Positions 42,088 through 59,680 of a DNA stretch of 64,000 nt are shown here, piece after piece (position 1 is the first letter of the stretch; each line of letters begins with the position of its first letter). The stretch lies in NCBI GenBank assembly GCA_048013815.1, contig CM106585.1:7316001-7380000 (forward strand), given 5' to 3'. The stretch comes from Setoptus koraiensis. Lineage: Eukaryota > Animalia > Arthropoda. The position numbers and the translations under genes are program-made. The notes beneath the pieces are model-generated. The model saw only the letters and a list, made by a program, of their open reading frames with translations, searched no databases and had not been told where the DNA came from.

Positions 42088-43354
42088 GGTTGTTCTAGCG
42101 ATTAGGTCCCCAATCGGATCTTGATGAAACTTCGGTTGTTCCATCGAACAGTGACCCACCCCGATTTGGGTATTTTGGGTATTTTTGGGTAGGGTATCGT
42201 ACCCTGATACCCGAACGGGTATTCCGGAAGTGCGGAAATTCTTCGTTCCCGAGATACCCGAGGTACCGCATTGTGGGTATTTCAAGGTATTTGAGGGTTT
42301 AGTGAGGGTATTATTGGCCATACCTACCCGCACGAACATCCGGTAGGGTATTCGCTCCTCCATACCGAAGGCAGATCATACTTAGAGGCCACAGGAATAG
42401 AATAAAAGCGGTAAAACTAAAGAGGCGTAACGAATGAGCGCGGCGCGGATCGAATCTGCGCCCGCAGTTATTCAGACCACCCACCGAGTCCTAGCGCGTG
42501 CACTATCGTTGAAAAAAGAATGAAGGGATTCATACCCACTTTTTATTACTAATTTACTTCGCTACTCAACCTTCCATCTATACTGGCCCTCTTTCGATCT
42601 TTACCGACTCGGCCTTCGGCCTCGCAAGCTTGCCTCGCTTCGGGTTGAGGGCTTCGCCCTCAACCCTCGCTCGAACCGACAACCCCGGCCTTCGGCCGAG
42701 TAATTGTCACACACCCGAACACCAGAAATAATGAAAATGCGTGCCCGTCGTACGATGTTCGATAAGACTACAATCACGTAGACCGGAAGTGGTTCATAGA
42801 ATTGAAGTTTATGATCTGGGGGGCTGGATGCTCTATGAAGCTAAATTCAACTGAACTACTAAGACATCGTTGAGATCTATACAATCATGCGAAAATTTTT
42901 GGTCTGAGGCCCTTCTGAGGCCCAAAAAATGCATTTTTCCATATATCCGGAAGTAAGAATTTCCGCACCTCCGGACCACTTTATTTGTTCTTTGGGGCCC
43001 CGGAGGGGCCCCTGTGTTAGGTTTGAAGAAAATCGGAGTGGGTCACTGTTCGATGGAACACCCGAAACTTCCGGTCCATCTAGACATAATTAAGACGGAA
43101 AAAGTGGTCCGGAAGCCAGGAAACTTCCGGTTCCGGTTTCACACAAAGTTGTAGCTAGAGCTCTGAAACTTCCAGGATGACGCTCTAGAAGACGCTCAAA
43201 ACGATGACGTAGTTTTCAGCTCTGTCCGACTTCCGGTTTCTTAGATGAAGCGATATTTTAACAATTAGAAGACCGGAAGTTGCGAAATTCATGCTTCGCA
43301 GCGCTCAAGGATGAGTCTGCGATTGTTCCGAGAACTCGGCCTGCGGCCTCGTAT
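42088..43354 (-). mobile_element. Partial inverted copy of MITE family A (A0), interrupted by element B1
   Basis: Starts GGTTGTTCTAGCGATTAGGTCCCCAATCGGATCTTGATGAAACTTC, the reverse complement of the A1/A2 right end. 43072-43354 aligns with the reverse complement of A1 ~45245-45540. Confidence 0.85.
42134..43063. mobile_element. Non-autonomous TIR element, family B (B1), 930 bp, 8-bp TSD GAAACTTC
   Basis: TIRs GGTTGTTCCATCGAACAGTGACCCAC / GTGGGTCACTGTTCGATGGAACACCC. GAAACTTC lies at both 42126-42133 and 43064-43071. A homologous copy is at 53542-54487. Confidence 0.9.
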
Positions 43355-43967
43355 CGCAACTGTAATGAATGACCTCAAAAATGTTTGCGCCTTCTTAAAT
43401 GCCTTCAAGAATCCCGCTATCTTAGACACTTCTAAAGATCAATATTTGGTGAGAAAGATGAATGAGAGATTGGATGTTCGTAACAGGCTCATGGAAGATA
43501 TAGAGAGCAAGAAGTACAAGTTTGTTGGTCGGCAAGACTATAAATCAGTTGACAACTTTTCATCGTTGACCAGAGAGGACATAATTGATATCACTCTCGG
43601 TTGTTATCAATTAAATAATGCAGGCCATTATCTTCAAGATATTCTAGATAGGGACAGTGTCAATCTTCTCAAGATTTGTAATGTGAATAGAAGAGAGTCG
43701 GTGTTGAGAATGAAATTCTTTTCTTCCATGTCAAAAGCAAAATATCACTATGCATACGTCCACTTCACCCGTGAGTCTCAAGGAGCTGAGGCAATCTTAG
43801 GTTATTATTGTGACTGTCAGTCCGGAGCAAGAACGGTTGGCACTTGCAGCATCATCAAAAAGGATAGGTGGGAACATGTTCAGAAATCGACGACTTTACA
43901 CGACATAATTCATCCTAAAGGACCTCTTCCATATGAAGGCTCGAAAATCAAATGTGTTTTAGATTAA
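43311..43967 (+). pseudogene. C-terminal fragment of a DDE_Tnp_4-type (Harbinger/ISL2EU-like) transposase with a truncated SWIM-type zinc finger
   Basis: NVCAFLNAFKNP, FSSLTREDIIDITLGCYQLNNAGHY and LGYYCDCQSGARTVGTC match the recalled pattern of these transposases (..ELTxGxYQxKQAxSY..YCxCKSGARTVGCCAH). The catalytic core and final His are missing. Homology spans about 43355-43850. Confidence 0.7.
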
Positions 43968-44270
43968 TTTTTTAGCGCTTAATTTTAATTAAGCGCTAAT
44001 GATGTAGTGATGTTGGATCCTAAATGGAGGAGGCAATCCACACACAAGCCTACAATTTTGAGTCACGCCCCCTCCTTAGCACACAGTAAGCTACAGCTTG
44101 ATTGAGACTCAAGCCACTCCACCTCCCTAACACACAGTAAGCTAAACACTAATTTGAGACTTAAGTCATTCCACCCTTTTAGCACACAAAAATGAACAAC
44201 GAATATTATAATCCAAGAATTCCCAGACAAGTTGTGGATTGATTTGCTATCATTTAACCGACCCTTGAAT

Positions 44271-44593
44271 ATGAGTGAAATCAGTGTCATGTCGAAGACA
44301 ATTCAATTTGCAAACGATGTACGTTTATACATCTGTCATAGATGCAAAAGAGGGTTTGCTAGGTATGACAACTTGCTGAGACATAGGAAAACTCATTCAG
44401 GTAATGGAAATTCTCATTTTTATAAATTCGAAGAATTTATTATGTATAATTTAATTCAGTAAAATTTCTTTCCATTGTAGAAAACCAGAGAAAATTTCCA
44501 TGTCCAACTTGCAAATCGATTTTCAATAGGAAGGACAATTTGACTATACACATTAAAATGTATTCATGTGGTACCAGAAATTTGATGAGATAA
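44271..44593 (+). CDS. Small two-finger C2H2 zinc-finger protein; exons 44271-44400 and 44481-44593
   Basis: YICHRCKRGFARYDNLLRHRKTH, an 80-nt GT..TTGTAG intron, then in-frame ENQRKFPCPTCKSIFNRKDNLTIHIKMYSC and a stop. The start codon is uncertain. Confidence 0.7.
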
Positions 44594-44709
44594 TCGGAAT
44601 GGAATTCTAAACTTAGGAGAAGAGTTGGCTGAAAGTATGATGGTGGGGACGAAGACTAACATTCAGTAAAGATGGACATGCACAGATGTAAAGATAGATA
44701 TGAAAATTC

Positions 44710-45578
44710 GGGTGTTCTTGCGATTGAGTCCCCACTCAGATTTCGATGAAACTTCACACATGGGCCCCGTAGGGGCCCAATATCATGGAATGAGTAGACC
44801 GGAAGCCAGGAAACTTCCGGTTCCGGAGTTACCAAAAGATTGAGATAGAGCTTTGAAAATTCATAATCGGATAGATGACGCCTAGCGGAGCACGATGAAA
44901 TCAAAATTAATCTTCTGCCACTTCCGGTTACCTAGATATAGCTGTTTAACGCAAAAAAGGGTGTGGCCGGGCCCTGTGCGGTCGCGATGAGCGGACCCAT
45001 CCTGTGCCTCGTGCGCGCAACACCCTGTATCCATGTCTGTTTCGGTCATTTTAACCCTGAATATCAACGAATTAGTTGGTTCGTTCACTCTTCCCGCCTG
45101 CAGCTGTGTTTGGATTGCAGTCATGTGAGCGGAGGGTGGAGGGCGCAGCCCGATACCCGAAGCGCTCATCAACCCTACCCGAAGGGTTCCCGTCGCACGC
45201 AGTCGTCGCGGGTGCGACGACGGAGATGTGACGGCCTCCAGAATACGAGGCCGCAGGCCGAGTTCTCAGACACACCGCATGTGCATCCCCGAGCGCAGCG
45301 AAGCAATAATTTGGTCACCTCCGGTCTTCTAACCCTAGTAATATCTCTTTATCTCGAAAACCGGAAGTCGCACAGAGCTGAAAATTATGTCATCGTGTTC
45401 ATCGTAGCTTGAAACGTCTCTGTAGTGAATTTCAGAGCTCTAGCTTTAACTTTATGTAAAACCGGAACCGGAAGTTTCCTGGCTTCCGGACCACTTTTTT
45501 CGTCTTAGTTAGGTCAGAATAGACCTATACCGGAAGTTTCATCAAGATCCGGTTGGGGACCTAATCGCTAGAACAACC
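44710..45578. mobile_element. MITE family A copy A1 (869 bp)
   Basis: Near-identical to 50820-51688. About 48-bp imperfect TIRs GGGTGTTCTTGCGATT..CCCCA / TGGGGACCTAATCGCTAGAACAACC. No intact TSD. Confidence 0.92.
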
Positions 45579-45644
45579 AAATTTAGAGACTCGGATCTCC
45601 ATAGAGATAACATGTGTAAAGTTTAGATACTTCAACACGGGAAT

Positions 45645-46823
45645 TTAGATATAGATGGTTTTGATTTTCCTCCAGTCAATATTCTTGCAGGCATTGAGTC
45701 CTGGTATCTGTTCACTAGTTTTGACAACAGCGGTTCGTAGTAGATACGCTCTCTCTAATAGTAGAAAAGTAGAGTTCCAGCGGACTTCTATATCTTGAAC
45801 TAACTGATAGGGTTTTGTAGGATTGAATCCGAGCTCATCCGCGGTTTTGGTTGTATTGTTCGCTTTTATTAGCTCCAGTTGGACGTGCTCGAACTTCTCT
45901 TTGCGCTTGGTCGAACTAGTTATTGCATCGACGAAAGATTTGACCAACGAGACCTCACTTTTAACCTCCTTCAACGCTGATTTCACGGCTAAATTGATGA
46001 CGTGTGCTGCACAACGCATGTGGACGAAATCGAATTTGTTATTGGATCCGAGAGTAAGAACGTGTCCCTTCAATTGGTCTATAGCGGAAATGTTGTTGGA
46101 GGCGTTATCTGTTGTGATTGCAGCAATCTTTGGTGCAATTTCAAAGTTGGTTAGCAGTCCCTGTAGATATGATCGCAGATCTTGCGTCTCGTGAGGATAT
46201 GGCAGATGCTTGAAGTCCAAAACAAATTGTTTGCAGACGAAATTCGGATCGATGTAATGAGCAGTGACACCTGCATAGCCGCGAGAGTTTTTTCTAGCAG
46301 ACCAGATGTCGAATGTTAATGAGATAGAAATAGCTTCCGCCTTCAATTTGTCCTTAACTAGAAGCTCCAGTTTGGGAGTAGAGTCAAGTATGATGTTTGA
46401 CAAGGTCCTTCGCTCAATAATTGATGCATCTGGATTAAGCGCTTTGCAAAAAGATTTGAAATTGGGATCGTCAACCATCAAATACTCGTGTTGCCCTCCA
46501 ATTATAAATTTAACCAAACGATCAGTCACAACATCGTTGCTGAACGTGAATTTGGTTTCTTTCGATAGCTGTGAACCTCTGTGTTTTTTTACATGTTTTC
46601 TAAGGGTAACATGGCTTGACTTTAATGAATATTCCATGCCGCATTCTGGGAATGAACATTTTCGTTTTTGACCAGTAGTTATGAAGTGCAATCCAACCCA
46701 TGTTTTCATAGACTGTGAATTATCGTTCTGCTGAGCTACATTAGTATCCTGACTTGTTATATCTTGAACTGACTCCTGAGTGTTCTGGCTACCACCGTCA
46801 TCAGAAGACGAGACTGTGTCCAT
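45645..46823 (-). pseudogene. 3'-truncated hAT-family transposase with BED zinc finger
   Basis: BED finger (WVGLHF..CSFPEC..LRKHVKKH), first catalytic Asp (SLTFDIWS), HMRCAAHVINLAVK and QDIEVRWNSTFLLLERA. It stops before the catalytic Glu and dimerisation domain. Confidence 0.9.
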
Positions 46824-46833
46824 AGTTGTTGAT

Positions 46834-47362
46834 ATATGGCGATTGCTATGGAAAGTATCCTCTCGAGAAATGATTATAACTTGAGTAATATGTGGTCTAA
46901 TAAATCTAATTATATATGAATCTATTCCTTATTGACCAATGATTGATATAAAAATAACTTTGGTTGACTAATGAATCTAATTAACAAATGCGAATGTTGT
47001 AACTTTGTAGGATTTGGCTGAATTTCCTATGGCAATTTCTATGGAAAGTATCCTCTCGGGAAATGATTATAACTTGAGTAATATGTGGTCTAATAAATCT
47101 AATTATATATGAATCTGTTCCTTATTGACCAGGGATTGATATAAAAATAACTTTGGTTGACTAATGAATCTAATTAACAAATGCGAATGTTGTAACTTTG
47201 TAGGATTTGGCTGAATTTCCTATGGCAATTTCTATGGAAAGTATCCTCTCGGGAAATAATTATAACTTGAGTAATATGTGGTCTAATAAATCTAATTATA
47301 TATGAATCTGTTCCTTATTGACCAATGATTGATGTAATAATAACTTTGGTTGACTAATGGAT
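46834..47362. repeat. 193-bp tandem repeat, ~2.7 copies, just 5' of the hAT transposase start
   Basis: CTATGGAAAGTATCC recurs at 46846, 47039 and 47232 with near-identical units. Confidence 0.93.
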
Positions 47363-47496
47363 ACTAATACAAACATATAAACAAATTACTCGGTAATCGT
47401 AACCTTGATTTCATTAAGTGCAATCAAAGTAACGATTACGTTCGCGCGCGCGCGCGTGCGCGCGCCCGCGCGCGTGATTCAATTGCCGATCAGTGC

Positions 47497-47792
47497 ACTG
47501 AGTTAAGCTCAGCTCAGCTCAGCTCAGCTCAGCTCACGAGCTGAGCTGATTCTTTTTCAGCTCAGCTCACGGGCTGAGCTGATTCTTTTTCAGCTCAGCT
47601 CACGGGCTGAGCTGATTCGCTTCCAGCTCAGCTCACGAGCTGAGCTGATTCTTTTTCAGCTCAGCTCACAGGCTGAGCTGACTCACTTTTCAGCTCAGCT
47701 CACGAGCTGAGCTGATTCTTTTTCAGCTCAGCTCACAGGCTGAGCTGACTCACTTTTCAGCTCAGCTGAAATGAGCTCAGCTCAGCTCAGCT
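47497..47792. repeat. Subterminal array of ~7 palindromic 33-34-bp units (CAGCTCAGCTCAC-RRGCTGAGCTG-ATTCTTTTT)
   Basis: Units read directly next to the hAT terminus. Confidence 0.9.
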
Positions 47793-47957
47793 GCCAACCC
47801 TAGCTAGTAGTCATGTAACTAAGAGATCACAGTACAATGGAAGCTACTCAAGTTGGCAAGTAATACGCAGCACAATCACACATTGAAATAGCACACAACA
47901 CACGTTGTGCGCCATTGCGTCTTGGTCTATGTATTGAAATTATTTATTGTGGCAAAA

Positions 47958-48638
47958 CTAACCGATGAAAGTGCACCAATTTTTGCATGCAGGCAGCAGA
48001 CATGTACATCTAGCGCTCGAAATACTGATTTGATCAGTATTACTTGTCAAGCACTGTTTCACTCTGGAGGTCAAATTTGCCTGAGTCGCTCTAATGGTCA
48101 ATTGATCTCGGTATATGTTTTTGTGATGGTGGCTGCCATGGCATTGGCAGTTGTATGCTTGTTTCGACAGTATGCAGGCAGACGCCAATAACTGGCCATA
48201 ATGATGACGTGACCAGTTGTCGACGTGTGCTTCGTAGCAGAGGGAATCGGAAATCATGGCAAACATATCCAGTTGTTTCTCATACTTTTTAGTTTTGTCT
48301 ATAGCCGGGCATCCCACGTTGGGGTAGTTGTCCACGTAGCGCAGTTTGTTTTGGGGTACCACCGGCAAAATTTCCTCTGATGAGTCGCATGGGCAGGTAA
48401 TGTTGATTTTGGCAAGTGCGCATGATAGTGTCACTGCATATTGGCCCTCGTTTTTCATCCATGTGTCATAGTCCTTGGAATGGATCCAGAGGTTGCAGGC
48501 CTCCTCGTTTATACGTTTTTGTAGTTGTGCGATCTGCAGAGTAGCTTGTTCGGCTGAGCTTTGTAGCCTTAGTTCATGTCGATAGGACTCGGCACACATT
48601 GTAGCGAATAGGAGAAACGGAACATGTCCCAGGGTCAT
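47958..48638 (-). CDS. Putative secreted cysteine-rich protein (226 aa) with an internal duplicated module; family unknown
   Basis: Uninterrupted ORF with a hydrophobic N-terminus (VPFLLFATMCA) and a predicted coiled-coil segment. Two copies of W-x12-C-x-L-x-K-x4-C-x-C. Confidence 0.55.
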   Translation of the reverse strand: MTLGHVPFLLFATMCAESYRHELRLQSSAEQATLQIAQLQKRINEEACNLWIHSKDYDTWMKNEGQYAVTLSCALAKINITCPCDSSEEILPVVPQNKLRYVDNYPNVGCPAIDKTKKYEKQLDMFAMISDSLCYEAHVDNWSRHHYGQLLASACILSKQAYNCQCHGSHHHKNIYRDQLTIRATQANLTSRVKQCLTSNTDQISISSARCTCLLPACKNWCTFIG

Positions 48639-48679
48639 TAATGGGATTTGTGCTGGAGCACGAGGGCGTTCCGATCAAA

Positions 48680-48795
48680 CTCATCAAATTTTTGGTACCA
48701 CATCAATACATTTTAATGTTTTTAGTCAAATTGTCCTTCCTATTGAAATTCGATTTGCAAGATGGACATGGAAATTTTCTCTGGTTTTCTACAAT
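48680..48795 (-). pseudogene. Decayed copy of exon 2 of the 44271-44593 zinc-finger gene
   Basis: Reverse complement reads TTGTAG|AAAACCAGAGAAAATTTCCATGTCCATCTTGCAAATCG..., highly similar to 44475-44590. It has lost the His and gained a stop. Confidence 0.88.
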
Positions 48796-50257
48796 AGTAG
48801 CTATTGGGATAGGTTTGGGTGCTACGATTATTCACGTGAGTAGAACAAATCAGTGCTTCTTCTAACTAGAAAAAAATAGCACGGTGTAAGCTGTATTATG
48901 AGAAATTAACTAGATAAATTTAGAACACTCAAAGCTTACAATGTTGATTAGTTAAATTTGGCACACAGTATGCTATGCGCGAGAAACACTAACTAGACGC
49001 GATTAGCACGCTCAATGCTGAGTTGCTAGTTAAATGAATTTAGCACAGCAGAAGGCTAGCTGTATACAATTCGGATCTAGTGCACTGGAAGCTGGAGGCG
49101 TCAGAACTAGAAGATTGTAGTACAGTAGAAGCTATTCAGAATAAATACTGCTTCCCAGCGCTGTTAATGCTGTTGTAGTTAAAACTAGACGAGTGTAGCA
49201 CGCTCATGGGGCATCAGAACTAGAAGATTGTAGAACAGTCGAAGCTATTCAGAATGACTGCTGCTTCTCAGCAGTGTTGATGCTAATGTAGATAAAACTA
49301 GACAAGAGTAACACGCTCAATGCTGCGATGCTAACTAGATGAATTCGGCACAGAGGAAGCCAAGCGGCGTACAATTCGGACTTGGCGCACGGGAAGCTAG
49401 GAGCGTTGTAACTAGAAGATTACAGCACAGTAGAAACTACTCGATATGACTAGTAAGTCCTTCTAGTATTTATGATACGCTTAGTAGTGCTGGGCGTGAG
49501 TAGCACAGTGACGGTTAGACTGGGTGACAGAAGTTGCAACTGAATATGAATGATTACCACACAAAGAAGGTTGCGTGTGATCTAAACATTAGATGAATAT
49601 TATATCTCAGGATGAGATGTTTACCAGATGAATTGAGCGTAGCAGGAGAATGGATGCAAACAATCGTTATCATAAACACAGGAAGATGATTTGAAGATAA
49701 CTAGGATATTTAATAATTGGACATAGTGCAATAGTATGGACAGAGCCCAACGAGGAAAATAATTTGATGACGATGGGTAGGAAAGACAGAGCGAAGAATG
49801 GAAAGAGAAACAGGAACAATTTCAAATGGATGAGATGTTCTGTGCAAATTTTTACGAAAGTCTTACGGTGAGAACATGTTCAGAAAGTACAATATTCACA
49901 TGGACTGAGACATCCGGATATTTCCAATGCTGCGAAAACAAGCAAGTGCACATCGATGTCACTTGCACAGATTACAATCAGCATTGTATTGGTGCTCTGT
50001 GCAAATTTTTACAAACTTCTTACGGTGAGAACTTTTGCAGAAATTAAGCTCTTCGCCAAACGATAGACAATGATTGCACACAGCGTAACATCTCTTCCGT
50101 CATAGAAACATTCCATCACATACTCGCTTCTCTATTCCAACGTTACTAACCAAACAAGTAATACTGATCAAATCAGTATTTCGAGCGCTTAATTTTTCGT
50201 GTGGACAAGTATTGTTGAAGGATTCAAAGGAGTTTATGACAACCTGTTAACCACCGA

Positions 50258-50447
50258 ACTTCAAAATGTGACCATCGAACACTGACCACCGAACATCGAA
50301 CGAGCAGATGGAACTGTCATCAGAAATTCGAATTTTCAATTTCGAATTTCGAAGTTCGAATTTTCAATTTCGAATTTCGAAGTTCGAAATGTGACCATCG
50401 AACTTTGAATTGTAACCACCGAATTCCGAATTGTGACCATCGAACTC
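50258..50447 (+). repeat. TCGAA-rich minisatellite (~21-bp units, GTGACCATCGAAC core)
   Basis: Recurrent ACCATCGAAC and TTCGAA motifs; an inverted copy lies at 52325-52870. Confidence 0.8.
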
Positions 50448-50819
50448 TGTTCCCATAGGGTTAACATTGTTAACGTTCAGATACCTTGAATGGTTGAGCA
50501 GTTTCTGCTGTGCTGTAATCTCTTAGCTACAACGCATCTAGCTTCCCGTGCACTAAATCAGAATTGTAGACAGCTAGCCTTCTGCTGTGCTGAATTCATC
50601 TATTTTACATCTCAGTATTGAGCGTGCTACACTCGTCTAGTTTCAGCCACATCAGCATTGACAGTGCTGAGAAGCAGTAGTTATTCGGAATAGTATCTAC
50701 TGTTCTACAATCTTCTAGTTCTGACGCCTCCAGCTTCCAGTGCACTAGATCCGGATTGTATACAGCTAGCCTTCTGCTGTGCTAAATTCATCTAGTGAGC
50801 ATCTCAGCATTGAGCGTGC

Positions 50820-51688
50820 GGGTGTTCTTGCGATTAGGTCCCCACTCAGATTTCGATGAAACTTCACACATGGGTCCCGTAGGGGCCCCACATCATGGAA
50901 TGAGTAGACCGGAAGCCAGGAAACTTCCGGTTCCGGAGTTACCTAAAGATTGAGATAGAGCTTTGAAAATTCATAATCGGATAGATGACACCTAGCGGAG
51001 CACGATGAAATCAAAATTAATCTTCTGCCATTTCCGGTTACCTAGATATAGCTGTTTAACGCAAAAAAGGGTGTGGCCGGGCCCTGTGCGGTCGCGATGA
51101 GCGGACCCATCCTGTGCCTCGTGCGCGCAACACCCTGTATCCATGTCTGTTTCGGTCATATTAACCCTGAATATCAACGAATTAGTTGGTTCGTTCACTC
51201 TTCCCGCCTGCAGCTGTGTTTGGATTGCAGTCATGTGAGCGGAGGGTAGAGGGCGCAGCCCGATACCCGAAGCGCTCATCAACCCTACCCGAAGGGTTCC
51301 CGTCGCACGCAGTCGTCGCGGGAGCGACGACGGAGATGTGACGGCCTCCAGAATACGAGGCCGCAGGCCGAGTTCTCAGACACACCGCATGTGCATCCCT
51401 GAGCGCAGCGAAGCGATAATTTGGTCACTTCCGGTCTTCTAACCCTAGTAATATCTCTATATCTCGAAAACCGGAAGTCGCACAGAGCTGAAAATTATGT
51501 CATCGTGTTCAGCGTAGCTTGAAACGTCTCTGTAGTGAATTTCAGAGCTCTAGCTTTAACTTTATGTAAAACCGGAACCGGAAGTTTCCTGGCTTCCGGA
51601 CCACTTTTTTCGTCTTAGTTAGGTCAGAATAGACCTTTACCGGAAGTTTCATCAAGATCCGGTTGGGGACCTAATCGCTAGAAAAACC
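50820..51688. mobile_element. MITE family A copy A2 (869 bp), 8-bp TSD GAGCGTGC
   Basis: TSD at 50812-50819 and 51689-51696. The opposite foldback arm (48990-49022) preserves the empty site with a single GAGCGTGC. Confidence 0.95.
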
Positions 51689-51910
51689 GAGCGTGCTAAT
51701 CGCGTCTAGTTAGTTTCCGCGCGCATAGCATTCTGTGTGCTAAATTTAACTAATCAACATTGTAAGCTTTGAGTGTTCTAAATTTATCTAGTTTATTTCT
51801 CACAGTACAGCTTTCACCGTGCTATTTTTTCCTAGTTGAAAAAAGCACTGATTTATTCTACCCACGTGAATAAGCGCTCTTATACTGGTATAATCAGTAT
51901 AACTCGTTTC

Positions 51911-52027
51911 GGGCCTTATAGGGTGACCGAGAAACGACCAAATAACATTTATAAACTAACCTTGGTCGACAAATCGACGAGAAAGAAGGCGAACGTGGTC
52001 GCCCATTTCGATCGAATGAAGCCCTAT
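51911..52027 (+). pseudogene. Fragment of an LTR-retrotransposon (Gypsy-type) integrase C-terminal region
   Basis: GPYRVTEKRPNNIYKL...VAHFDRMKPY matches the GPY/F..Y.L..V.H..RLKPY motif. No other pol domains lie nearby. Confidence 0.65.
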
Positions 52028-52324
52028 AACGCCGCGGAGGCCGGGGCGAACGAACAGACGGCACACGTTAATGCTCTTAGAAGCCTAATGGCCTCATTAA
52101 TTAGCGCTTAATTTTAATTAAGTAGCTACTGGGGTAGTGATGATGGATACGTTTATTCACGTGACTATGTAATCCTATGGAGGTTTGACTTAGTCAAATT
52201 TGTGAGAATCCTGCTAGACATTACACATGTGTCCTATGTAGATTCGACTTGGTCTATTATCGCTTCACTCGAAAATATTTCGTATGCAATCATATGGAGA
52301 TTTGACTAGGTCACATTTGTGCGG

Positions 52325-53020
52325 AGTTCGGTGGTGACAAATCGAACTTCAAAATTGAAAATTCGAATTTCTAATAAGAATTTCATCTGCTCGTTCGATG
52401 TTCGATGGTCAGAGTTCGATGTTCGATGGTCACAAGTCGAACTTCGATATTCGAAATTGATGCACAATAACTAAGTTTGCGCCATTGACTAATTGGTGTG
52501 TCGAATTAAATTACTCATTGTGGCGAAACTGACCATTAGAATCTTACCAAATTCCGTACGCATGCAATCAACATGTGAATCATGCTGCGAAAGAAATTTG
52601 GAGTTCCAGGTGCTTGTACAGAGTTCGATGGTCACAATTCGAAGTTCGCTGGTAACAATTCGGAGTTCGCTGGTAACAATTCGAAGTTCGATGGTCACAT
52701 GACAGTTTCATCTGCTCGTTTGATGTTCGGTGGTCAGTGTTCGATGGTCACAGTTCAAAGTTCGGTGGTAACAATTTGAAGTTCGAAGATTGAAAATTCG
52801 AATTTCCGAAACCAGTTCCAGGTGCTCGTACAGAGTTCGATGGTCGCATTTCGAACTTCGAAATTCAAAATTGATGCACTATAGCAAAGTGTGCGATATT
52901 AACTCATTGGTGTGTCTAACTTAATTACTCATTGCGGCGAAACTGACTATTAGAATCTTACCAAATCCCACACGCAAGCAATCGACATGTGTATCATGCT
53001 GCGATGGAAATTTGGAGAAC
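52325..53020 (-). repeat. TCGAA-rich minisatellite blocks interleaved with a ~150-bp segment duplicated at ~415-bp spacing
   Basis: GTTCGATGGTCAC units. AATTGATGCAC..CTTACCAAAT..AATTTGGAG occurs at about 52455 and 52870. Confidence 0.8.
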
Positions 53021-53282
53021 TTGTATTTATTCTGTCATCTTTTCGGCTACTCTGATCGACAGGCATAGATGATTATCTCCGACATGTTGTCACATACTCG
53101 CATCAATATTCCAACGATACTCGTCTATCCAAAAAATTAAGCGCTCGAGGTACTGATAGAATCCGTATCACTTGTTACATGGAGCTTCTGCCGAGATCCC
53201 TAGTACATTGGCTGATGCATGCATTAAATCAGCGAAATGTACTAGCGGTTATGACACCACAAGTTAAGTCACCTAAGATGAC

Positions 53283-53420
53283 ACCACTAGCAGCAACCAC
53301 TAGCAGCAACCACTAGAAACAACCACTAGCAGCAACCACTAGCAACAACCAATAGCAACAACCACTGGCGACAACTAATAGCAGCCACCACACTAGCAGC
53401 AACTACACTAACAGCAAATA
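53283..53420. repeat. 13-bp degenerate tandem repeat (CCACTAGCAGCAA)
   Basis: Several near-perfect units followed by decayed units. Confidence 0.85.
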
Positions 53421-53541
53421 TCACAGCAGCCACTTCTTGTATCTTAATGTTGCGCGATTACACTGTAAGGCCTGTACACTCAACGATAGACGAAACGCGT
53501 TCGACGCCAAACATGCGGTCGACATGATATTAGCCAGATGC

Positions 53542-54487
53542 GGTTATAGTAGCGAACAGCGACCATGCCCAATTTGGGTATTTTGGGTATTTTTGGGTAG
53601 GGTATTGTACCCTGATACCCAAACAGGTATTCCGGAAGTGCGGAAATTCTTCGTTACCGAGATACCCGAGGTACCGCATACTGGGTATTTTAGGGTATTT
53701 GAAGGCATATTGAAGGTATAGTCGGCCGTACCCACCCGCTCGAACATCCGGTCAGATACTGAGGTCCTAACAACGGAGGTAGATCATTCCTAGAAGCCAC
53801 AGGAAACGAATAAAAGGGGTCAAACTGAAGAGGCGTGGCCAATGCGCGCGGAGTGAAACTGCGCCCGCAGATAGTGAGACCACCCACCGAGTCCTAGCAC
53901 TACTGAGGATAATGAAAGTTGAATAAAGGCTGAGCCCTAACTTTTTCGACGCTTTCGACCTCGCGGACCGCGCAGACCCAGAACTCCGCTCGTACTGACC
54001 CCTATTTCGATCTTTACCGACTCGGCCTTCGGCCTCGCGAGCTTGCCTCGCTTCGGGTTGAGGGCTTCGCCCTCAACCCTCGCTCGAACCGACAACCCCG
54101 GCCTTCGGCCGAGTAATTGTCACACACCCGAACACCATAAACAATGCGAATGCGTGATAAGCTGAGTGCGGCTCGTGAGACGTCAGATGTGACTCGAATT
54201 GCGTGACCGGAAGTTGGTCCAACAGTGAATGGTGGATATCTTCTGAGTGGATGATTATAGAGGTTGGATTGCAACTGCATGTTGAAGGTGACAACTGAAC
54301 CTATTCGAAAATACCAAAACTTTTAGTCTGAGACACTTCTGAGGCCCGGAAAATGCTTTTTCCCGTATCTCCGGAAGTAGAAATTTCCGCACTTCCGGAC
54401 CTTCAAAAATGTTCTTTGGGGCCGCTTCGCGGCCCTTGTGTGGAGTTTGAAGGAAATCGGGCTTGGTCGTTGTTCGCTACTACACCC
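53542..54487. mobile_element. Family B element copy B2 (~945 bp)
   Basis: TIRs GGTTATAGTAGCGAACAGCGACCATGCCC / GGGCTTGGTCGTTGTTCGCTACTACACCC. Colinear with B1, with a near-identical hairpin module at ~54006-54137. No TSD seen. Confidence 0.85.
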
Positions 54488-57270: not shown

Positions 57271-59294
57271 CTTAGTGATCAACTCGATCTCTAGCAGTGA
57301 AAACTGTTTCCAGGTTGATATGAGATGCCCTTCTCTTTTCTTGTTCGTATAAGCTATAAAGGATTGTGAGAAAACCAAGATATTGTTTCCTGGGATAATC
57401 GAGATACGGATTCTCAAGGTCGACTCGGATTGAAATCGCATTTCAACTGAACTGCTAACAGTGACACTGACATATATCTTCATTGCATATGCCACCGTTT
57501 TGTCACAGCAGCGCGAAGGAGAGTAAAGGCGTTTTACACATTACATATTACATTACATGAGGTGATACAACAGACCGATAGATTATTTTGCAAGTTGAGC
57601 CTTTCTTGATACATGGGGTGGTCGCAAATAGAATCACATTTTTACTGAGCTTCCACGATGCATTTTTCAAGCAGGCGATTTCCACTTTCTGCGCAGTTTC
57701 TTATCGAAGACAACCGGAGACATCCCAAGACGCAACCACAAGTTGTTGCGCTCTGTCAAATGTATTGGCAAGACGATCGATTAGCAACCACCCCTTGACT
57801 AGACAGATTCCACTTCAACTCTTATCGGGATGCCCTTCTGGGTGAAACAAGGTCGGAGTGCACTGACACAACAAGAGGAAAGCGACAAACCATTTTGCAC
57901 GGTCCTACATGTATCTTGTACATTCTTATACAATGTTATACATTTTTATACAATGTATCATATGGAATCGCTTCTTTTCTTTATTTCTACATGCTTCTTT
58001 GACAGGTTAGTTATTAATTAACTATTGATTATTGGCATAATTAGTATCGGTAGCAGTTCACTCCATCACTTCAGGCAATCTTGTGGGTCGTGTCTGAGTC
58101 GTGCCGCAATTTGAATTTCGCATTCTCTTCTATCTGTTTGAGCGCTTAAATCCCCTTTCCCTAACAAGGTAATGAGGAGGATTGGACAGAGTGCCCAGAA
58201 AGAATTGAAGCAAAATAATTCAGGATACAAGGAAAAATAAAAGCGAGAAAGACCGTGCAAAATAGTTTGTCCTGCAGCGCATATTTGGTGCTCTGTCGAC
58301 AGGAGGTGTGAGGCAATGTGACACTTCCTCCTCTGTCAGTTTGAAGCGCCAACTTGTTGATTTTAACCCGTTTTCGCACAATTTTCCTTTTCAAATGATA
58401 TCATTGATTCGACTGATCTTATCATGAGTCTACCTCAAAGGGGTTATTGGTCGCAGTTTGAGTGAAAGCCATTATGGCGATTAATTGATGCATCATCATC
58501 AGTTGCAATGCTTTTTGCAAATATTTGAAACATACGTCACGCAACCAATATAGATTTGGCGACCAAAGTGTGTGGCTAGAATGAATATTGTCCAACACGT
58601 TTTTACAAAGAATGACTTTCTTGGATGGATATCAACCTGGATATCTAGCATATAGGGTGGCCCATAAAACATAGTGTGCTGCGCAATCGCACAGAGCGTC
58701 AGCGTATGTCGTGCCGAACAGCAGAGGAGTGCGGGTACGACGTGAATAAAAAGGTACCGCGAATGGGTAGCGGGACTTAGAATTTTACGATCTGATTGGA
58801 CGAATATCTTTAGCTGATACTAATTAAGGTACTGATACTAACGCGGTTACATGTACATGATTCTTGTGAACTAATCGGGTATTTTGTGTCCTCGTCTGCA
58901 TGGGATGATGTAGCAATATTTTCAACATCAATATATCGCATCATTGCATGAAATGGATGTAGGTAACGCACGTACTCACAAATAATATGTGACATATTAT
59001 ATGTGACATATAATGCGGATACTGGGTATGAGTGAGAATGGGCGTGGGCGGTCGGGTATCGGTCGCACAGGCATGACACGTGTGCTGCTTGTGCCAGCTC
59101 GGTTCCGTCCGTTAGAGCTAGCTTGGTGTGCCTGCTACTATTACAGTTTAACCGATGCTGTTCGTACTTGAGTATGAACTGTGCTCGCTAAGAATTATCC
59201 GTGCGAAATGGGCCCCTTGATCCTGCCACCTTAGGCAGGCTTGAGAAAGCTGCACGAAACAAATACGAGGTTTAATGGCCTAATTTAATCACAT

Positions 59295-59367
59295 GGGCAC
59301 GTGGCCTAATGGATAAGGCGTCTGACTTCGAATCAGAAGATTGCAGGTTCGAATCCTGCCGTGCTCG
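59295..59367 (+). tRNA. tRNA-Arg (anticodon TCG)
   Basis: 73-nt cloverleaf: acceptor stem GGGCACG/CGTGCTC, A box TGGCCTAATGG, anticodon arm CTGAC-TTCGAAT-CAG, B box GGTTCGAATCC, and a downstream T-run. Confidence 0.97.
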
Positions 59368-59680
59368 AATATTGCATTTATTTTTGCCAAAATTAATTAT
59401 CCTCACAATATCTAAACATTCATCTATTAGACTAATTTTGTAGCCAATTAAAGCCAATCCGGATGTTTTAACATGGATAGACTAGACGAAAAGCTTGAAA
59501 ATGAGAACGCTATATACACTTCTCGCGCGTCTAGCGGATTTTTACTGAACTTATTTATCCAATTCAATTTTGCCGCTGAAGAAACAAGTTAAAACATCAG
59601 AAACGTGATCGATATTTTGGCGTTCAGAATCATTCGCATCTGGATGTATTTTACCAAAACATTTATACTAATACTTCAAA

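Follow-up and report, generated by a model that had tools for sequence, protein, structure and literature searches.

C-GNA-G mini-hairpins and fixed-distance tip palindromes in Merlin-like miniature transposons of Setoptus koraiensis: a tentative single-strand reading

Five copies of miniature DNA transposons in a 64,000-nt stretch of the Setoptus koraiensis genome (GCA_048013815.1, contig CM106585.1, 7,316,001-7,380,000, forward strand; hereafter the window, to which all coordinates are relative) carry short hairpins in which a 3-nt GNA loop is closed by a 5'-C/3'-G pair (15 instances, about 6 independent loci). Self-comparison and reading of the ends divide the copies into three related non-autonomous lineages, A1/A2/A3, B1 and B2. 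The two tips of each element are GGGT and GGTT, and we describe it along the strand that runs from GGGT at one tip to AACC at the other. The hairpins include a subterminal one near the GGGT tip, here named H1, and several in an internal block which we call the cassette (Table 1). The independent GNA loops share the GGGT-to-AACC strand, and all kinds of tip have a palindrome at nearly the same distance from the end. We tentatively favour, at a probability of roughly 0.4, the reading that this strand adopts a cis-acting fold as single-stranded DNA (ssDNA), which is kept by transposing lineages.

Hairpin loops, tip palindromes and the internal cassette

All the hairpins listed in the original prediction were recovered at their given positions when the sequence was checked, together with one further member at 45141 (GGGC-GCA-GCCC). 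With stems of at least 4 bp, A1, B1 and B2 possess four C-GNA-G hairpins each against 0.10-0.12 expected, and the counts stayed below four throughout 1000 dinucleotide shuffles of each element. The window as a whole contains 24 such hairpins, 15 of them within the A/B copies, which make up roughly 4 kb; the nine outside have stems mostly of A+T and are near chance expectation (about 10, a rough hand estimate from counts of loops and closing pairs). The enrichment is therefore confirmed as real and non-random, and the structural reading of it is partly supported. Independent GNA loci number about 6 and not about 12, because the B1/B2 cassette pairs and the A1/A2 pairs represent the same loci by descent.

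The loops are not a random selection either, as had been proposed: read in element polarity, the GGGT-to-AACC strand shows GNA in six of the ten independent palindromes with a 3-nt loop (P about 1e-5), and the polarity is the same in all six (6/6, P = 0.03). This strand carries the GNA loops of A1, of B2 and of both cassettes. Homologous loops vary at N alone, with 3-4 substitutions in total: H1 has GTA or GAA, and two cassette sites common to A and B have GAA in one family and GCA in the other (P = 0.04, or 0.012 if the flipped loop of B1 described below is counted). Moreover, the stems vary between loci (GGCC, GGGC, ACCC, GGGGCCCC, GC) while C-GNA-G is constant, again in agreement with the earlier claim, and a protein that reads the duplex would not tolerate such variation.

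One exception is seen at H1 of B1. It was suggested that each H1 has its GNA loop on one strand, and the loops of A1 and B2 do share the element strand; in B1, however, GGA is on the strand opposite to all others, and the GGGT-to-AACC strand reads TCC. As TCC is the exact reverse complement of GGA and lies within a perfect palindrome, it looks like a flipped loop, and B1 H1 is probably best regarded as carrying an inverted loop. Inversion of a spacer by template switching is a known mutation (PMC8604942). Neither chance nor duplex protein sites nor template switching alone easily accounts for the loop spectrum, the polarity and the N-only variation taken together.

H1 was described as homologous between the elements, and indeed it occupies positions 52/53 to 69/70 from the own GGGT tip in each of A1, B1 and B2. 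Across A1, A2, B1 and B2 the alignment shows two double changes (T-A to G-C in the outermost pair, and C-G to G-C in the second pair from the loop) and one wobble pair, and the outermost pair is unpaired in A2 and B2. These changes are suggestive of the stem covariation that the original prediction emphasised, but 49 of 500 shuffles equal two double changes in four sequences, and hence the covariation is not significant by itself.

A palindrome near the end is not confined to H1. All four tip kinds have one with a stem of at least 6 bp, centred 60.5-65 nt inside the tip. At the GGGT end it is TGGGCCCC-GTA-GGGGCCCA in A and GGGGCCCC-N3-GGGGCCCC in B; at the GGTT end it is AGGGTA-TYG-TACCCT in B and, in A, a palindrome with a 6-nt spacer (Table 1). 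Shuffled ends show such a palindrome within the same 9-nt range 1.2% of the time, per end; with three cases unrelated in sequence, chance is not a sufficient account. The position of these palindromes is thus conserved and their sequence is not, and only the GGGT-end one is of the GNA type. In the predicted single-strand fold of A1, its two tip palindromes form opposite each other in a long foldback stem. The fixed-distance tip palindromes are a new observation here.

The B cassette is G-rich on its GNA strand (53 G against 31 C), and this strand is also the one that folds more stably as DNA (z = -4.25 against -1.42 for the other strand). The nearest-neighbour folds used presumably contain no special term for C-GNA-G, a hairpin marked, when formed, by a sheared G-A pair, a high melting temperature and resistance to nucleases. 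For two of the B cassette hairpins, family A contains diverged homologues. The flanks of two cassette hairpins read 5'-GA/5'-GA and could pair as tandem sheared pairs. Outside the cassette the B1 and B2 flanks are 50-80% identical, the identity dropping gradually within about 20 nt on either side. Since the flanks are alignable on both sides and show this gradual fall, we rejected a nested insertion of the cassette.

Several other identities were considered for this block and its surroundings. A coding cassette was rejected, as the peptide is of low complexity, basic and without a homologue in the peptide search. A tRNA-like T arm at about 42440-42460 was dropped because ARAGORN finds no tRNA in the elements, and so was a polymerase III B box, the GGTTCGA match in the cassette being just 7 nt long and without an A box. 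Scans for the cassette pattern gave no match in the viral set and none in the bacterial and archaeal genomes. The single metagenome match (L001:553-595) is a bacterial terminator-like hairpin with the same 11-bp stem and a TGA loop followed by a run of T, and is taken as a coincidence.

A single-strand fold weighed against other explanations

According to the favoured reading, transposing lineages would keep a palindrome about 61-65 nt inside each tip, by position rather than by sequence, and also an internal GC-rich cassette of short C-GNA-G-capped hairpins, all on the GGGT-to-AACC strand. Both structures would form when this strand is single-stranded, and they may serve in cis in the propagation of the element, for instance in pairing or bending of the ends, in priming, or during replication or repair synthesis that is specific to one strand. 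With stems of 2-5 bp, it is implausible that duplex DNA would extrude a cruciform. The recognition by DNA structure put forward in the original prediction, as cruciform or ssDNA, is therefore tenable in part: the cruciform is rejected on physical grounds as the general form, the short stems leaving the single-stranded state as the only one that fits, and a single-strand hairpin agrees with the polarity, the loop spectrum and the N-only variation. Extraordinarily stable DNA mini-hairpins have GNA loops only, closed by C-G, with N in the order A > G > C > T, and they are more stable than their RNA counterparts (PMC13037366). Because C-GNA-G is exactly this DNA rule, the molecule is more likely to be DNA than RNA. 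What the sequence shows is the anatomy, the enrichment, the polarity, the N-only variation and the constant tip distance; that selection and not mutation bias maintains the hairpins, that the molecule is DNA, and which step they act in are inferred, as is the undescribed mechanism for which the original prediction made them a candidate.

A number of observations weigh against a conserved single-strand fold. The near-identity of the B cassettes extends over the linkers and the N positions of the loops, which structural selection alone does not predict, and block exchange or gene conversion between families would fit it equally well as selection. The A cassette folds without strand asymmetry (z = -2.1 against -1.7), and family A does not preserve the 11-bp stem of the cassette: the three pairs in the middle are broken, with no compensating changes. 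Many non-GNA palindromes are likewise present in the elements, and the covariation at H1 falls short of significance as given above. Inserted copies also decay freely, as H1 of A2 is broken and, in a count made by eye, the A cassette is about 2.6% diverged where the element as a whole is 2.1% diverged. Given that the copies decay like neutral DNA once inserted, any selection would act on the transposing lineage and not on the host locus. Furthermore, we know of no single-stranded stage for Merlin, the superfamily which the elements resemble, or for other eukaryotic cut-and-paste transposons of the DDE type. All element results come from five copies in a single 64-kb window, which is a small sample. 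The picture of miniature transposable elements with inverted repeats (MITEs) studded with C-GNA-G hairpins that are preserved through stem and loop changes stands for the enrichment and for the MITE structure; its claim of preservation is weakened at H1, by the lack of significant covariation and by the broken A2 copy, and at the 11-bp stem.

The same hairpins might instead act in RNA, if the cassette and H1 were a folded untranslated region of an autonomous transcript (for stability, 3' end formation or regulation) that the miniatures inherited when the gene was deleted. The strand polarity and the tolerance of G-T/G-U pairs suit RNA as well as a single DNA strand, and folded as RNA the B cassette again favours the GNA strand (z = -3.97 against -2.68 for the other strand). 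Stable RNA hairpins usually have GNRA or UNCG tetraloops. All capped loops here are by contrast the 3-nt GNA of DNA mini-hairpins, whose RNA versions are less stable (PMC13037366), and no family of Rfam gave a match, even at E up to 10; we consider a role in RNA somewhat unlikely. Binding of the palindromes as duplex by a dimeric transposase domain or a host factor, the hairpin never forming, has a precedent in piggyBac, where two C-terminal domains of the transposase bind identical 19-bp palindromes in this way (PMC11707139). It would account for palindromes at a fixed tip distance beside arrays of CCGGARG, a motif with 29 of its 32 occurrences in the window inside the A/B elements, and for the loose NRGGY pattern common to the outer half-sites. 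However, both the sequence and the spacer of the palindromes (3 to 6 nt) vary between the ends of one element and between families, the cassette stems of 2-5 bp are too short for dimer sites, and such binding gives no reason for the one-strand GNA bias or the N-only variation, so that we hold duplex sites to be unlikely. The CCGGARG repeats themselves are probably transposase-binding repeats.

It is also conceivable, if quite improbable in our judgement, that the hairpins are a neutral by-product, with arms matched and spacers flipped by template switching, GNA loops derived from one duplicated ancestral hairpin, and the cassette spread by gene conversion or recombination, all without selection. 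Template switching does homogenise arms and invert spacers with no selection involved (PMC8794818, PMC8604942), and the B1 loop is exactly the reverse complement of a GNA loop. Similarly, the identity of the B cassettes includes the linkers and falls off over a short distance, B1 and B2 are only 11.4 kb apart in the same orientation, and coral MITEs too have an internal region better conserved than the ends, which the discussion of that study leaves unexplained (PMC2872659). Yet template switching gives no preference for G at the first and A at the third position of the loop and does not fix one strand, the stems are wholly diverged between loci with C-GNA-G retained, and mutation alone is not expected to place unrelated palindromes at an equal distance from all tips. 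Finally, short GC-rich palindromes could cluster by chance in GC-rich repeat DNA, as 4-bp stems are common and the window has 420 palindromes with a 3-nt loop; this is contradicted by the shuffles of each element, by the loop spectrum and by the tip positions, and is extremely improbable.

The single-strand fold could be taken one step further, to Merlin-type transposons that pass through an obligatory strand-specific ssDNA stage here (for example copy-out or repair-coupled synthesis of one strand), with the cassette as a loading signal or one resembling the single-strand initiation (ssi) signals of bacteria and the tip palindromes as a four-way junction that pairs the ends. We regard this extension as unlikely.

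Comparison with known systems

In the usual view, recognition of eukaryotic cut-and-paste transposons takes place on duplex DNA, through inverted ends and subterminal repeats. If strand-polar mini-hairpins and palindromes defined by position only are kept by the lineages described here, they would point to a requirement in cis that is recognised in the form of a folded single strand. To our knowledge, requirements of this kind have been described for phage origins, for N4 promoters and for HUH transposons, and not for animal DDE elements. An ssDNA stage, if true, would mean that a single-strand cis element recognised by its structure is seen for the first time in a eukaryotic DDE transposon. 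A kept fold would also help to explain why in some miniatures an internal block is conserved better than the ends, the puzzle raised for the coral elements called CMITEs. If gene conversion and template switching are responsible instead, the case remains useful as a caution that mutation can give repeats the appearance of covariation and ultra-conservation.

The loops resemble those of the d(GCGNAGC) mini-hairpins of ssDNA phage G4-type origins, RSF1010 ssiA and the promoters of the N4 virion RNA polymerase, which follow the C-GNA-G rule, use all four N and lie on one strand (PMC13037366). These systems are bacterial or phage-borne, with a known single-stranded stage and a primase or polymerase partner, whereas the elements here are animal transposons of the DDE type. 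The N4 promoter hairpins (5-7 bp stem, 3-nt loop), which their polymerase recognises on ssDNA or on DNA extruded by supercoiling, are similar in shape only, as the animal genome is without such a polymerase. Strand-specific subterminal DNA hairpins are also recognition structures, for TnpA, in IS200/IS605 and other HUH single-strand transposons. HUH elements (IS200/IS605, Helitron) have subterminal hairpins at asymmetric ends and lack inverted ends and target duplications, both of which are present here, and therefore our elements are not HUH members.

Among duplex-recognised systems, piggyBac has palindromes about 19 bp long whose distance from the tip is defined and specific to each end, but they are identical at both ends, read as duplex and associated with a TTAA target (PMC11707139). 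In the elements studied here palindromes and spacers differ between ends and between families, the loops are strand-biased and the target duplication is 8 bp, which sets them apart from piggyBac. The piggyBac-related coral CMITEs resemble them in an internal block common to families with different ends and suspected of aiding transposition (PMC2872659). They belong to another superfamily, the discussion of that paper mentions neither hairpins nor triloops in the block, and its origin is unexplained there too (PMC2872659). For Merlin itself, neither a hairpin cassette nor fixed-distance palindromes of this kind were found described in the literature searched.

The elements and their surroundings

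The A/B copies sit in a repeat island at about 42-55 kb of the window (Table 1). All eight tips have GG...CC. The ends of B1 are identical to each other over positions 4-26, and those of A are alignable over about 155-236 nt. The terminal sequences of B1 differ from those of B2, yet within each element both ends match, which points to two separate lineages rather than a fresh copy and a decayed copy. With lengths of 869-946 bp, inverted ends, target duplications, non-coding sequence and five copies in the window, the elements have the structure of MITEs. The Merlin superfamily is related to bacterial IS1016/IS1595. It is defined by target duplications of 8 or 9 bp and terminal inverted repeats of 24-462 bp starting with 5'-GG (PMC8101967), and we found 8-bp duplications (A2 and B1), 5'-GG tips and inverted ends of such length here. 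The domain scan of nine long open reading frames (ORFs; 173-855 aa) of the window and of the 149-aa ORF of A1 gave no transposase domain (DDE_Tnp_IS1595-type), and the latter, the longest internal ORF, had no match in Pfam. Because the window holds no transposase gene, the assignment is made from structure, by which A1/A2/A3, B1 and B2 appear to be Merlin-like non-autonomous elements with polar ends.

Table 1. Elements, cassettes, hairpins and tip palindromes in the window
Feature	Position	Strand	Description
A1	44710-45578	+	869 bp; + strand runs from GGGT tip to AACC tip; long imperfect inverted ends
A2	50820-51688	+	869 bp; 97.9% identical to A1; 8-bp target duplication GAGCGTGC at 50812-50819 and 51689-51696
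A3	42088-43354	-	older A-like copy in pieces 42088-42133 and 43072-43354; 78% identical to A1; split by B1
B1	42134-43063	-	930 bp; GGGT tip at 43063; target duplication GAAACTTC at 42126-42133 and 43064-43071
B2	53542-54487	-	946 bp; sister lineage of B1; 76% identical to B1 overall; no clear target duplication
A1 H1	44761-44779	+	TGGGCCCC-GTA-GGGGCCCA; 8-bp stem; positions 52-70 from GGGT tip
A2 H1	50871-50889	+	homologue of A1 H1; stem decayed, two broken pairs; arms TGGGTCCC/GGGGCCCC
B1 H1	42994-43012	-	GGGGCCCC-GGA-GGGGCCCC as listed; 8-bp stem; loop TCC in element polarity
B2 H1	54419-54435	-	GGGCCGC-TTC-GCGGCCC; 7-bp stem; loop GAA in element polarity; one C-G to G-C change from B1
B1 cassette	42591-42735	-	G-rich 145-nt block; three GAA-triloop hairpins on GGGT-to-AACC strand
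B2 cassette	54004-54148	-	three hairpins; 1 of 145 nt different from B1 cassette
A1 cassette	45126-45304	+	diverged homologue of B cassette
GGCC-TTC-GGCC	42611-42621 (B1); 54024-54034 (B2)	GAA on -	cassette hairpin
11-bp stem with TTC	42642-42666 (B1); 54055-54079 (B2)	GAA on -	cassette hairpin
CGGCC-TTC-GGCCG	42686-42698 (B1); 54099-54111 (B2)	GAA on -	cassette hairpin
A1 cassette hairpins	45141; 45177; 45249; 45298	+	GGGC-GCA-GCCC; ACCC-GAA-GGGT; GGCC-GCA-GGCC; GCGAAGC; A2 copies 6110 nt further on
A3 copy of GGCC-GCA-GGCC	43338-43348	-	TGC on + strand
A1 GGTT-end palindrome	45510-45527		TAGGTC-N6-GACCTA; centre 60.5 nt from tip; A2 equivalent 51621-51636, 5-bp stem
B1 GGTT-end palindrome	42191-42205		AGGGTA-TCG-TACCCT; centre 65 nt from tip; B2 equivalent 53599-53613, loop TTG

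The insertion sites add to this picture. B1 was inserted at the octamer GAAACTTC in the inverted end of A3, and intact A ends carry GAAACTTC once, at positions 39-46; one family has thus landed in the terminal repeat of its relative. The duplicated octamer of A2, GAGCGTGC, is present once at 49006-49013, in the opposite arm of a foldback-like element, and represents a paralogous empty site. This host element comprises 48825-49206 together with 50619-50819 and 51689-51876; its arms are about 91% complementary and the right arm is split by A2. A1 is flanked by GAAAATTC on the left (44702-44709) and AAATTTAG on the right (45579-45586), which form no clean duplication; the left flank agrees with GA-N4-TC, the target pattern seen in A2 and B1.

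The similarity of A3 to A1 ends directly after the GGCC-TGC-GGCC hairpin (43354). An ORF of 218 aa (43311-43967) overlaps this end of A3; it has no match in Pfam, and by eye its CxC...C motif is SWIM-like. It may represent captured sequence, with a rearrangement breakpoint at the hairpin. A second conserved block is shared by B1 (42167-42291) and B2 (53575-53700), being 94-96% identical and subterminal at the GGTT end. GGGTA repeats and palindromes are frequent in it, and its conservation exceeds that of the terminal 26 nt.

The window also contains animal genes, for which the domain scan of ORFs identified a BET bromodomain protein, Jagunal, a ubiquitin-conjugating enzyme and a short-chain dehydrogenase; its sole tRNA gene is a tRNA-Arg (TCG) at 59294-59368. 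Other repeats lie among the A/B copies. For instance, a 127-nt piece occurs as an inverted repeat 4 kb apart (44474-44599 and 48669-48795, 93% identity), and its first copy falls in a stretch (about 44260-44600) that by eye resembles a fragment of a C2H2 zinc-finger gene. A 193-bp unit is repeated three times in tandem at 46835-47413, the further copies being 97% and 81% identical to the first. At 47522-47754, tandem units of 33 nt each contain a hairpin with a 10-bp stem, CAGCTCAGCT-CACG-AGCTGAGCTG, which is not of the GNA type and has weak, sub-threshold microRNA-like matches in Rfam.

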